Assembly (NCBI GenBank): GCA_904063045.1
Contig: CAJFCJ010000009.1
Span: forward strand, 1,240,968 to 1,304,967
DNA length: 64,000 nucleotides
Reading direction: 5' to 3'
From: Dimorphilus gyrociliatus
Lineage: Eukaryota > Animalia > Annelida
Positions within the stretch are counted from its first letter, which is position 1, and the number at the start of each line of letters is the position of its first letter. Position numbers and translations under genes: made by a program. Shown here one piece after another: positions 28,086 through 34,500 of this stretch. The notes beneath the pieces were generated by a model. That model was not told the origin of the DNA and made no database searches. It saw only the letters and a program-made list of their open reading frames with translations.

Positions 28086-28942
28086 TTACTCGGATTCTAA
28101 TGGTCTTTTTCGACTATTATCCTTATTTATAAAATTCGGATTCATAGCAAGCTCTTCTTGCATTTGTATAATTTCTTTTATTTGCTCATCAATCCGATCA
28201 ACTTGAGATTTAGGTCCAACGTTTGGGATATATCTTGCAAAAATATCATTGTATTTTACTGCAAAACTAGGCCTAATACTAAATAGATTTGAAATTAGGC
28301 TATATAATAATTCAGGATTATTAAGGAACGAATGATTTAATGAAAATCTAATAGAATTAAATAACGTTTCATTAAGTTTTCTATTAACAAATTCATCAAT
28401 GAATAAATTTAATAATAGATTTTTAAGATTTGTACATAATTTCAATTGGATATAATTCTTATCCATATAATAAAAGATTGGAATAATAGAACCAATACTA
28501 ATAATATATTTATGGAGTAAAAGATGGAAATATTCAATAAGTTTTCCATTATTTTCTTCCTAGATTTTTAAAGAAAAAACATTAATTAATTATTCATCTA
28601 ATTTACATATTTTATATGGCTAACTTTGAAATTTATTTCTAATTCTGCAAATGTTCCCTTTATATAAGATTCTATTGTATCTTTTAAATCTTTTAACAGT
28701 CTTTCATCCTTTTTCGAACAAACGCATTTATAAATAAATGTATAGATTTTTTCAAATGAGAATTCTTTGAAATTCGCTTGTTCATTTAATAAAATTTGTT
28801 CAATTATTATTTTTAAATTAGGCCAGAAGATCATATCATAGGTTTCATCTGAAATATAGCTTATCTCTTGTACTCTATTATCCCAAAGTTTAGATGAGAA
28901 TTTAACTTTTGTATTATTATTGCCTTCTTCAGTAAAATCCAT
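28086..28942 (-). CDS. CACUL1: CDK2-associated cullin domain protein (CACUL1/C10orf46-like), 2 exons
   Basis: FWPNLKIIIEQIL..SFEKIYTFIYKCVC, IPIFYYMDKNYIQLKL, IRPSF..FARYIPN, SRKRP. A 28624-28560 intron joins the two ORFs in frame. Confidence 0.75.
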
Positions 28943-29481: not shown

Positions 29482-30852
29482 ATGTTATTAGAAGCCTTAG
29501 AAATATTACAATCTGCTGGTGAAGATGAAAATACCTATGTTACCGATTTTGCCTTATATAAGGTCATTTATATATTAACTGTTTATGGACCAATATTTAT
29601 GGCTACTTTTCTGCTATCTCAAGAATATTTAGGTGAGCGATAGAAAAAAAACCGGTCAATCCTTTTAGTATCATTTGTTATAATAATAATAAAGAAATCA
29701 AACAATAGGGGAGAAGATAGCCTGTTTCCCTCCTGAGAATTTTACAGACTCTCAAGCGGATTCTGTAAATGAGTTTTGTTGGAATGGTGGATTTTGTAGT
29801 AGTTCTGCCGAGGAATTACAAGCTTTAAAGCAAGGAGTAAACGTTAGAACACTGTTTAGCCAACCGCATAGATACTATCCATTATATCTACCTTTACAAG
29901 CTTTAGTTATGATGTCACCAATTATCATTTGGAATGTTTTAACAAAATCAAAGTTATTAGCTATTTTAAGGGCGACAGAGGAATTTCTTGAAGATTTAAC
30001 ATCAATTGTTCAAGACAAGGATGATAAGGATACCATTAAATCTAGAGCCACGTCCCTTATCAAACAATTTCATAATACTTGCATCTCAGCGTCGGAAGAT
30101 ACCCAATTGGCAAAAATTTTAATGATACGTATCGGATGGGAATTCTGTTTAATAGTTGGGGGTATTTTCTTACAGTTTAAAGTTTTCAATCACAATCCTA
30201 AGCAATTTCATTGCTATCTTCCGATGTTTATTGATGAGGAAATAACTTGCACAGTACCAGTTTTAGATTTATTAGATGTTATTTGGAGTATTGCTGTTGC
30301 TTGCTTAGTCTTAGCGCTTGGCCTAAATTTGATGTTTGCTTACATAACTATGAAGATGCATTTTGAAATGTTTCAGCCATTATTCTTTAATAGTCTACCA
30401 TACGGTGATCAAGACGATTTTAACGAAGATATTCAATGGTCTGACAACTTTATACAGCATTCATACGAGCTGTTAGTGATGATTTTCGAAGAAAATAATG
30501 CAGTTATGACAAAAGCCTTTGTTCTTTCGGCAATGAAACCTCCAAACCAGGCAGTGGAGCAGGAAAAAAAGGTTAGGAAACTTTTACAGTCTAGAAAAAA
30601 AATTGAACAAAACAATTCCGCAAACTTAACAGGACCAGTAGAGAAGAGAATCTTTAAAACTGAGAGGCACCTACAGCCAAGATGCACTTGTCGAGATAAT
30701 ATTAAACCTACTATGGGTGATTATTCATTATTATCTTTTTGCTGCGTCTTATCAATGTGTATCTTTCTATGGCATATTGAATAATTTCTTTTTTCTTCTT
30801 TATAATATATATTTTCTTTTTAGACGAATCAGCATCTTTCTTAATCTATTAA
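29482..30852 (+). CDS. Pannexin-like large-pore channel (innexin/pannexin/LRRC8 superfamily), 4 TM; 3' end uncertain (30784 or 30852)
   Basis: Exon 1 (29482-29632) plus exon 2 (from 29709): DFALYKVIYILTVYGPIFMATFLLSQEYLGEKIACFPPENFTDSQADSVNEFCW, HRYYPLYLPLQALVMMSPIIIW, and second loop FHCYLPMFIDEEITCTVPV. Confidence 0.8.
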
Positions 30853-31508
30853 TCTTACTTTGCTAATTTATAAGGAATTGATATGAGTGCTTAGTTTTGT
30901 TTTTAATATAAAATTCTCTTTATAAAACTCTTTTTTCAAGTTTTCTTATCTTTCTCTCTCTCTCTCCCATTCTTTCTTTCTTTAACTCTATCTAAATCTT
31001 TATCTTTTCTCAATACGTATTAGTTTGTCACTTGACAAAAACTTTATCAATATATACCTTCACGCTTCTCTCTCCTAAGACGGAGGGAAGGAGGAGCGTA
31101 ATGAAAGGGAGGAGGGAATTAAATGAAAAGCAAGAAGCGCCCCCTGTGCTACAACAGCGAAAAAATTCCCTAATCGATGAACGGCGAGATCTCGGGGGCG
31201 TCTCGTTTTTCGACGCCTGCTAATTTTCCAGACACATACATACAATACATATAAGCATCACACTGCCGCTTTAAGAGTACTAGTAGAAGATTCTATTTAA
31301 TATTATAATTAAAGAAAACATAATGACAAAAATATAAAGGTTACATATAACTTTGGAAGAGAATTGCTCTAATTTTCTACTATTTATTGATAACAAATAT
31401 AAAACCCGAGCCATTTGCGGAAAATCGATAACTCTTCGAAAAAAATGCTTCATATTATGGAATTAACAATAGGATAGATTACCTTTCTCCTATTAAGATA
31501 ACCGCATA

Positions 31509-34500
31509 ATGGATAATATTGATTTGGCAATTTTTGATCCAACTTTATCCTCAAACACCGAAGAAAATAACATTGAAACTGTTGTTAAAAGTCAGGAAGA
31601 TCTGCTCAAAAAAATTGAAATTATCTCCAATAAGAACAGAAATGATAGGATTGATAAAAATTCTTTCAATGAATATCAAGTAAATTTTGACGACGTGGAG
31701 AAAAAGGAAGAAAATGCCAAAAGTTTATTTGATTTGTCGATGGAGAAAGAGATAAACAACTTTGAATCAGCTTTAGATAGTAGATCGAACGATCCGTGGG
31801 GAAACAATTCAGGTATTTCAATGTTAGATTACCTTGTTTTGTATCGGTGTTTGTATGATATTATAGTTATATATGTGCTTGAAATATCAATATATTCTTA
31901 TCATCATATAGCTTTGTGTTATGTTTTTATTGTTTCCTTTCTTCGAGCCGTATCTCCCTTCTAAATATATCATTAGTCAAATATATCTAATTATTGATCT
32001 TCTTTCGTAAGCAAAGAAGAACGAAATGATGCCACCCACTTAAAAAATACGTCAATCAATATTTAAGCGTAAAAAATTTTAGAGGGAACAATCATAAGCC
32101 TTAGCAGATGATAATCTAGCCTATCTTATTCTCTTCTTGGACAAACAAGACAAATACAAAAATACAATCATCTTTGCTTTCCCATCTTTTCCTCTATAAA
32201 AATGTTAATAAGGTCCTTTGTATTATAATGTAGTAGAATTTCGTTGTTGATTATTTTTTAATTATTGCGAATAGTAGAGAGGTTAAGGGATAAAAATCCT
32301 GGCATATTATTTGATATTATTGATTAAATAAAACAGAATTAAATTCTCATGGCAGATGTGCCATTTCTCAAAGATAATGTTACCTTCGCGTTTCTTTTTT
32401 ATAATTCCAATTCTCTCTTATATAGACTTGTGTTTCTTTTGTTTTTATTTCAAGGATCAAATGAGAAAAGCGACGAAAATCCTTTTGAGGATGATAAATT
32501 CGAAAGTGAAACCAATTCTGAATTCAATCCATTCGCAACCATCACTGAAGATAGTGAACCTTTCAATCCTTTTCAAACTATTCGAGAGGATGATAGCAAG
32601 TTATCGTTTAACGATTTTGAACATTCAATGCCGATTGTTAAAATTGGAGAGAATGTTGTCGAAACCAAACGTCAAACGATTATACCGCTTTTACCGCCTC
32701 CGCCTAAAGTAAGCAGGGAACCTACGATATCAGATGACGAGGAGACTGAAACAATGAATGATAGTGAGTCGGACGCCGGTCAGAATATTAGGGAAAATCC
32801 TTTTAATAAAGAATTATCGGTTGACGAACAGAAATATGCCGATTTTCAATCGATGATTGAGGCAAAACATAAAATTACAGAAAAACTACAAGGTACAACA
32901 AGCCTTAAAGTAGAGGACGAAGGGGAGGAGGAGGCTTTAGCCCCATTTTATATTCCATATACAGGAAATGGATGGAAGATGCTTTTAAGAATGCCAATGA
33001 AAAAGAAAATGACTGGAAATAGATATTGGAAAGAATGTTTTGTTAAAAAGAGAATTGTCAATAATATTCCAACAGTTACTATTTACGAGAAGGAAAATAC
33101 TCAGATTATATGTGAAATAGACTTGAAGCCAACATATCAACTTAGTGATATGAATCTTGAAGCCTTTGATCAATTCGGAAAATGTCATACTATAAAACTA
33201 TATAGTGTCCTTTATAGAGAACGTCTTGGGGTAAAGGCTGAACGAATAGCACCAACTTTAGGAGATATCGTCCGGGTTAAAGGTGAATCATAATAATTTT
33301 GATCATTAATTATTTAATTATTCAGTTGCTAAAAGACATATAGAAATCTATATTATAAATATAACTAAGCAAATCCGTTCCTATTCTTTCACACACAGCA
33401 CGAAAGCGGAAGTACATAAATTTTTCTCATATTCCAAATGTGATAATTTAAATGAAAGTAGGTCTAAAGTCTAAAGATTATTAAATTAACATTTTTATTA
33501 TACTAATTCACAGACATACAGTATATACATATATATGTAAACTATATATTATGTATGCAGCAGTCGCATATAAGCTATAAATATTCCTTATGAAAAAGGT
33601 AGGCCTACTAGTTAATTAAGTTATAAGAAAACATGAATAAAAAGAGATATTAATAATAATATCTATTAATAGATTTTGCGGGGAAGGGAAAAAAACAACT
33701 AAAGAAGCTATTTGTTAAAATCTAATAGTTCACAAACAGGCTGATAACCTATTAATAATGCATTCAAGCAATGATGATATTTATATAATGTTAATATATG
33801 CCAATACAGATTTAAAAGGTTTAAAGGATTTGGTACATAAACCAAAAACTACAATGATATTCGATCAACACGCTCAGAATAGTGAATTAGTGAAATTAGG
33901 ATGCCTAGATTATGAATCAATTAAAACTTTTAGCCGGCAAATAGAAGATGAAATGATGAAACTTCAACCTCTGGAAACTGCAAATCGTCAATCTTATACA
34001 ACAAATGAAATTACAATAGAAGTAATTGATGAATATTTTGCTCAGTTGGATACCGAGAATCGTATAGAATTTCATAAATCAAGAGTTAGGGTTTTTTGTC
34101 TCTCCTTTTTAAATGGTGATCCCTATTGCGAAATAGGAATGAACGATAGGAGTAGACAAGGTAAGGAGGTTGTTGGTAGGAAAGACATCATTCCAATAAA
34201 AACAGAGGAATGGATCAATATTGAACAAATGGAATTTCATGTGCTTGTTGACCTTGACGAATACGAAAAAACTAGATTAATTAAATTTAAACCGATGGAT
34301 GCTGTTCGATTTGAATTATTTAGGTTTAGGACAAGACAACAGTTGAACAAAGAGCTACCTCTTCAAGTTAGAGTATCCCTTATGATTACTGATGAAAAGG
34401 CTGAAATGAGATGCGAAGCGGTTGTCTCACAATTTTGGACAATGTCTAGGAAAGCTAACCAAACGCCTTGCCAGGACATTTGCATAAGGTTGCCGATTCC

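Follow-up and report, generated by a model that had tools for sequence, protein, structure and literature searches.

A probable pannexin-like large-pore channel gene outside the canonical innexins of the annelid Dimorphilus gyrociliatus

We report a gene of the annelid Dimorphilus gyrociliatus whose product is nearer to the chordate pannexins than to the innexins by every similarity measure that we ran on its sequence and predicted fold. The gene lies in a 64,000-nucleotide (nt) stretch of the forward strand of contig CAJFCJ010000009.1 (assembly GCA_904063045.1, positions 1,240,968 to 1,304,967; G000:C9:1240968-1304967 in our labelling), hereafter the window, which has a GC content of ~30%. 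At window positions 29482-30784 (+) lies a gene that is transcribed and spliced and that encodes a membrane protein with four helices, a member of the innexin/pannexin superfamily. With a probability that we put at roughly 0.7, it codes for a large-pore channel subunit of this superfamily and belongs to a small undescribed family, so far found in annelids, that is distinct from the innexins and has a pannexin-like sequence profile and predicted fold. The family, an exitron in the gene and a conserved tail-anchor helix are new here; no paper describing the family was found in the limited literature that we covered. In textbooks the pannexins are chordate-only descendants of innexins, and the annelid family raises the possibility that the pannexin channel type predates the chordates.

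Superfamily membership and resemblance to pannexins

The two exons were searched separately, and exon 2 matched the Pfam Innexin profile PF00876 (which also covers the pannexins and has a cut-off of 25 bits) with 41.2 bits and an E-value of 1.6e-10, over the N-terminal half only. Hydropathy and AlphaFold prediction recover the architecture of the superfamily, namely an N-terminal helix, four transmembrane (TM) helices, two cysteines in each extracellular loop (EL) and a proline in TM2, with exon 1 contributing a hydrophobic segment at amino acids (aa) 23-47. The residues C5, C23, C168, C180, P70 and W74 (exon-2 numbering) are kept across the family, the pannexins and the innexins. A six-frame search of the 77.9-Mb assembly with PF00876 brought up about 30 canonical innexin genes (loci L001-L030) at 120-330 bits, with the pannexin-like gene as the lone outlier at 47.8 bits; searches of the genome found it to be single-copy, with no paralogues. 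Judged by PF00876 score, the family (32-69 bits) is about as far from the innexins as are the pannexins (28-33 bits).

Five lines of evidence point to the pannexins: solved-structure sequences, profile-profile comparison, the hits beyond the family, language-model neighbours and the predicted fold. When the protein was compared by phmmer with all sequences of solved structures, pannexins were the only matches, the PHRYYP region being aligned with HKFFPY of Panx1. The family profile, run against the PDB, retrieved frog Panx1 (2.5e-9), Panx3 (4e-8), human Panx1 (5e-7) and Panx2 (2.6e-5), with the innexin INX-6 of C. elegans (PDB 5H1Q) at 0.012. In hhalign the family aligned with the pannexins over 250 columns from TM1 to past TM4 (probability 98.8%, E 6.5e-17) and with the Dimorphilus innexins over 91 columns, TM1-TM2 (96.8%, 2e-10), which is close to the values for pannexins against innexins (88 columns, 96.7%, 4e-10). 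Canonical innexins far outnumber pannexins in the databases; the non-family proteins among the 49 hits of the family search include five pannexins, four divergent proteins of the pannexin side and just two canonical innexins, of which one is a triple fusion. The nearest clusters listed in the ESM Atlas are all chordate pannexin or pannexin-like (0.93-0.95).

The full-length fold was predicted for an orthologue from Owenia fusiformis (predicted local distance difference test score, pLDDT, 87.7). Foldseek with this model returned Panx1, Panx2 and Panx3 at ranks 1-42 (TM-score 0.49-0.64) and INX-6 at rank 43 (~0.45-0.50), and the AlphaFold model of the window's own exon 2 plus tail (pLDDT 83.4) gave the same order. 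Structure prediction, which the original prediction had proposed as a check, thus sets the pannexins above both INX-6 and LRRC8. In the match ranking to the annelid protein INX-6 falls below the pannexins and LRRC8, and the VRAC (volume-regulated anion channel) protein LRRC8 itself ranks below all pannexin entries. The idea of an LRRC8-ancestor-like protein, also part of that prediction, is not supported by any specific affinity to LRRC8: exon 2 has no match to PF12534 at E<=10, LRRC8 is absent from the PDB sequence hits, its structural rank is below that of the pannexins, and there is no leucine-rich repeat (LRR) domain, the tail consisting by hydropathy of a linker and a TM helix.

The chordate pannexins (Panx1, Panx2, Panx3 and amphioxus KAI8517230.1) are thus the best profile, embedding and structural matches of the annelid protein, and share with it the Pfam family, the four-TM fold and the N-terminal helix. 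Common to both are also the motifs CF.P..F(S/T), PH(K/R)xxP where TM2 begins and, past TM4, L(Y/F)xxLP, after TM2 extra residues and an EE(L/F)..(D/E) helix (EE(F)L(E)D-like in both groups), a sequon at the position of Panx3 N71 and Panx2 N86, and a phase-1 intron just before EL1. The differences are likewise clear: identity is just ~15-20%, EL2 of the annelid protein is much shorter, the annelid protein has a cytoplasmic motif of its own (LPYGDQDDFNE..W...HSYELL) and a C-terminal membrane helix with an exitron that removes it, and its host also has ~30 innexins. With the canonical innexins, as exemplified by loci L001-L030 and INX-6, the protein has in common the superfamily, the 2+2 cysteines, the proline and tryptophan of TM2 and, in EL1, QxYxG-x-I-x-C and P..FT; it differs from them in lacking YYQWV and FPxVTxCDF...LPIN, and in scoring 41-48 bits against their 120-330.

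Extracellular loops, sequon and pore

The consensus of the Dimorphilus innexins carries YYQWVP at the start of TM2 and the EL2 block FPxVTxCDF...YTVQCVLPIN. In our alignment the family has PH(R)(Y/F)(Y/F)P at the first of these places, where pannexins have (P/Q)HK..P and innexins YYQW(V/I)P, and the second is missing from the annelid protein, with KQFHCYLPMFIDEEITCTVPVLD (including KQFHCYLP) standing in its place. The absence of the two innexin signatures, noted in the original prediction (as YYQWV and FPRxTxC), is therefore borne out, as is its description of a very short EL2 with two cysteines: these form a C-x11-C pair whose columns are invariant across the family, the pannexins and the innexins, and the model places strands at 166-169 and 177-181. 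EL1 further has a third, unpaired cysteine (29795-29797, in GGFCSSS), which is also a cysteine in a close relative and a tryptophan in most family members.

The N-F-T sequon of EL1 is aligned by hhalign with N71-F-S of Panx3, and glycosylation is documented at N254 of Panx1, N86 of Panx2 and N71 of Panx3 (PMC3928549). Among the innexins outside chordates, sequons in the loops are common (PMC8769644). As read from the sequence, the sequon is suggestive of a pannexin-like state and not diagnostic of it; of the claim that it marks a pannexin, the homology of position with Panx3 N71 stands, and its value as a mark does not, given its spread among non-chordate innexins and its presence in ~7/13 family members. 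‘Group 7’ innexins of the mollusc Limax have been called pannexin-like for their loop glycosylation sites and are classed among the molluscan innexin orthologue groups; their extracellular loops are described as longer, which sets them apart from the annelid family with its very short EL2 (PMC8049302). The roles of W74 and R75 at the extracellular constriction of Panx1 have been described (PMC7108861). In the annelid protein these positions are Asp-Ser, the acidic residue being conserved in the family, and since W74/R75 are thereby replaced, its ion selectivity is likely unlike the anion preference of Panx1; Panx2 and Panx3 likewise differ from W74/R75.

As in its relatives, seven or eight copies of the protein are likely to form a ring that encloses a wide pore. 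A channel in a single membrane, that is a non-junctional one, would be more likely than a gap junction, because EL2 is very short, the sequon lies at the Panx3 N71 site and the innexin loop motifs are missing. One might object that the protein could form ordinary innexin-type gap junctions, its likeness to pannexins being functionally meaningless: seven innexins with loop sequons belong to working gap junctions (PMC8769644), and the 2+2 cysteine framework of docking loops is intact in the annelid protein. We consider this improbable, as EL2 is far shorter than in innexins and is devoid of the FPxVTxCDF...LPIN block, the sequon is at a site that is glycosylated in Panx3, and the channels that match it best in structure are non-junctional.

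Phylogenetic position

The tree was computed from 53 sequences and 347 columns under LG+C20+F+G4, and sampled 14 members of the family, four of a subgroup GA, two amphioxus proteins annotated as ‘uncharacterized’ (GB), two sequences without taxon label (group GC), 11 pannexins, 17 Dimorphilus innexins and three arthropod innexin domains. The canonical innexins form one clade with support of 100/100 and a long stem, and the family falls outside it. Family and GA form a clade (100/97), and the pannexins group weakly with GB and GC (82/65). An approximately unbiased (AU) test rejects a grouping of the family with the Dimorphilus innexins to the exclusion of the arthropod innexins (log-likelihood difference, delta lnL, 51; p 6e-5). 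The original prediction had named robust nesting within protostome innexins as an outcome that would overturn it; nesting of the protein among the innexins of its own genome is rejected. Of its central claim, a pannexin-type and not innexin-type channel in a protostome, the resemblance and the non-membership in the canonical innexins hold, and sisterhood or orthology with the pannexins does not follow.

The reason for the last point is that the tree is unrooted and that the innexins, the pannexins with their amphioxus relatives, and the annelid family meet at one node, so that sisterhood of family and pannexins is undecidable from it. With midpoint rooting, the root comes to lie on the stem of the innexins and makes the family and the pannexins sisters; this placement assumes clock-like rates. 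Several other points also weigh against a pannexin affinity or temper it. The closeness to pannexins may come from a long, derived innexin stem, with family and pannexins sharing ancestral states, or from similar rates; the pannexin sample is without full-length Panx1, Panx2 and tunicate sequences and the innexin sample without cnidarians, ctenophores, nematodes and molluscs. Group-conserved columns are only moderately lopsided (14 shared by family and pannexins, ~8 by pannexins and innexins, five by family and innexins), both structure models came from alignments in which pannexins stood next to innexins, the sequon is lacking in about half of the family members, and expression is documented by one public RNA run, as contigs.

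An arrangement that we hold to be unlikely, on a par with the gap-junction reading, would have the family and GA as orthologues of the amphioxus pair GB (P0041 and P0045; Branchiostoma XP_078700995.1 and XP_078701927.1), together a third ancient lineage that is a paralogue of the true pannexins and was lost in chordates other than amphioxus. The pair consists of divergent superfamily members distinct from the amphioxus pannexin. A clade of family, GA and GB is not rejected by the AU test (delta lnL 1.7, p 0.34), the grouping of GB with pannexins has the weak support given above, and GB has the TM1-EL1 pattern LPVLMST...LLGSSIQCFP in common with the family. Still, the best tree joins GB with the pannexins, GB scores against the family profile (2e-6, 2e-5) no better than the amphioxus pannexin (2.4e-6), and it is without the tail helix and the LPYGD motif.

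Somewhat less credible again is that the gene is a fast-evolving, lineage-specific annelid innexin duplicate, which lost the innexin motifs and looks like a pannexin through relaxed or convergent evolution and long branches. Such an origin would be consistent with a family known solely from annelids and from contigs lacking a taxon label, with the innexin-like QxYxG and P..FT retained in EL1, with PF00876 scores slightly exceeding those of the pannexins and with the meeting of long branches in the tree. It would also fit the first intron, whose position and phase are identical in the canonical innexin L018; as a phase-1 intron also lies no more than one residue from this position in P0042, the pannexin of amphioxus, the intron is ancestral and non-discriminating, attesting to homology only. 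Against this origin stand the AU test, the separation of the innexin clade at 100/100 under a mixture model, the extent of the pannexin similarity, which is not confined to a few sites and whose 250 columns include the cytoplasmic loop, TM3, EL2, TM4 and, beyond TM4, the LP motif, and the age and good conservation of the family, with ~41% identity and invariant motifs between Owenia and Dimorphilus. A nested annelid innexin is rejected by the AU test (p 6e-5). A contaminant or deuterostome scaffold, the other outcome that the original prediction had feared, is rejected as well: the contig is of megabase scale (matches extend to 2.64 Mb) and also carries canonical innexins of the same intron style, and contamination is further contradicted by the genome-like AT-richness, the tiny introns and the annelid relatives in Owenia.

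Gene structure, exitron and tail helix

The coordinates of the gene and its features are collected in Table 1. Exon 1 encodes MLLEALEILQ...DFALYKVIYILTVYGPIFMATFLLSQEYL and ends one base into a Gly codon; exon 2 continues in another frame with (G)EKIACFPPENFTDSQADSVNEFCW...PHRYYPLYLPLQALVMMSPIIIW, and its conserved cytoplasmic C-terminal domain reads LPYGDQDDFNE...HSYELL...EENN..MT...AMKP. All strings quoted in the original prediction are present in the sequence, taken from these two open reading frame (ORF) pieces, which it had assumed to be joined. The join is confirmed by a 1107-nt contig from a public RNA run, 100% identical to the window and covering exon 1 from 29510, which skips exactly intron 1 and so establishes that the gene is transcribed and that exons 1 and 2 are correctly connected. 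The end of the gene, placed earlier at 30852, runs into the 3′ untranslated region, the stop of the long ORF lying at 30782-30784.

Table 1. Coordinates of the pannexin-like gene and its features in the window
Feature	Start	End	Strand	Description
Exon 1	29482	29632	+	ATG start, N-terminal helix, TM1; 50 codons and one base of a following Gly codon
Intron 1	29633	29708	+	76 nt, GT..AG, phase 1; splits a Gly codon that precedes the first EL1 Cys by 5 residues
Exon 2	29709	30571	+	EL1, TM2, cytoplasmic loop, TM3, short EL2, TM4, conserved cytoplasmic C-terminal domain
N-F-T sequon in EL1	29738	29746	+	From translation
PHRYYP motif, TM2 start	29864	29881	+	Stands where innexins have YYQWVP
EL2 cysteine pair C168/C180 (exon-2 numbering)	30212	30250	+	C-x11-C, predicted beta-hairpin
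Intron 2/exitron	30572	30632	+	61 nt, GT..AG; removed in RNA contig
Long-isoform tail	30633	30784	+	GPVEKR basic motif, linker, DY plus hydrophobic C-terminal helix, TAA stop

A close relative served for the analysis of selection; its protein P0001 is 89% identical, and its DNA at L045 shares 83% identity over exon 2. Identity to L045 is 88% in exon 1 and 38% in its 5′ flank, and intron 1 is 45% identical with indels. Exon 1 is also near-identical to the N-terminus of Owenia P0011 (MLLEALEILKS...) and to an exon-1 homologue in L031. Codon changes in exon 2 are 101 synonymous to 24 non-synonymous, and from this pattern the exon is evidently under purifying selection.

The second intron and the conserved C-terminal hydrophobic helix downstream of it were absent from the original prediction. 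Removal of the 61 nt, as in the RNA contig, shifts the frame, and the protein of ~340 aa ends in ...EQEKK-DQ-stop (TAG at 30639-30641); when they are retained, the ORF runs to the TAA and encodes ~408 aa. The 61-nt stretch is 82% identical to that of L045; the two differ by an in-frame indel of 3 nt, and neither splice site is lost. The segment behaves as an exitron, which implies two transcript forms, of 340 aa and 408 aa. The spliced, tail-less form is the one present in the sole RNA assembly; as its stop lies 6 nt past the last junction, the exon-junction rule for nonsense-mediated decay would not apply to it.

The tail helix of the long form comprises ~22 residues encoded at 30710-30781, corresponding to a hydrophobic segment at aa 334-357 (Kyte-Doolittle value 1.87) and to a model helix at 335-356. 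Its codons differ from those of the relative by 10 synonymous and two non-synonymous changes, and conservation collapses past the stop (3′ flank 49%). A (D)(Y/F) followed by a terminal hydrophobic helix also ends the family members P0007/P0053, P0008, P0009, P0012 and P0039, and the long form is therefore a conserved protein. We know of no described pannexin or innexin with such a C-terminal membrane helix. The exitron may toggle the channel between a tail-tethered and a tail-less state; a tail anchor with its removal at an exitron is a new design in the superfamily, which could inform the gating of pores by C-terminal tails.

Evolutionary implications

A tentative extension of our preferred reading, which we regard as possible but less likely than not, is that a pannexin-type lineage existed beside the innexins in the bilaterian ancestor and survives in annelids. 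The chordate Panx proteins would then be what chordates have kept of an old paralogue, instead of being innexins modified once connexins had appeared, and the innexin branch would have been lost in chordates. In Panx1 the tail is removed by caspase cleavage, and the exitron might, by the same tentative reading, be an RNA-level counterpart of this. With canonical innexins and a pannexin-like gene together in one tractable annelid of tiny genome, phylogeny, synteny and physiology can directly test the origins of pannexins and of non-junctional large-pore channels of the ATP-release type.

Distribution of the family

An exhaustive HMMER search of 1.84 billion representative sequences, together with a word search, yielded only 49 proteins with E<=1e-3, of which 19 had E<=1e-30; the family makes up ~35 of the 1.84 billion. 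Its named members are three proteins of Owenia fusiformis, CAH1796372.1-CAH1796374.1 (P0016, P0015 and P0011), automatically labelled ‘Innexin’ in UniProt; the rest come from contigs lacking a taxon label. The three paralogues of Owenia, against one copy in Dimorphilus, probably form a tandem array, as their accessions are consecutive on one chromosome-scale record. GA, the sister subgroup, turns up in the same samples as the family.

Neighbouring genes and other superfamily proteins

Downstream of the pannexin-like gene lies a further gene on the plus strand (window 31009-31810 and from 32453 onward), transcribed in the same run and with a 642-nt GT..AG intron at 31811-32452; a Pfam search with its ORFs gave no match. 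Upstream, a minus-strand gene (window 28086-28942) comprises ORF pieces without a Pfam match. Its counterpart in the relative, L045:1-439 (-), is Cullin-like (weak match to PF00888), so that local gene order is kept between the two species. Fragments of GPHR_N, the Golgi pH regulator domain (L031:3731-3889 and L033:1065-1217), lie 2-4 kb upstream of, and on the opposite strand to, P0002 of the family and P0183 of GA in other organisms; as a case of synteny this was discarded, since GPHR is absent at the Dimorphilus locus and is found on contig C28.

The innexin/pannexin and connexin families are regarded as unrelated. A protein of 354 aa, P0043 (ENA contigs, e.g., ERZ26695794), matches the Pfam Innexin profile with 26.7 bits, above the cut-off, and the Connexin profile with 26.2 bits, below its cut-off of 31.3; in the tree it stands, like its relative P0049, on the side of the pannexins. 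Finally, P0038 (988 aa) has three tandem arthropod-type innexin units in one chain, probably because the annotation read through a tandem array.

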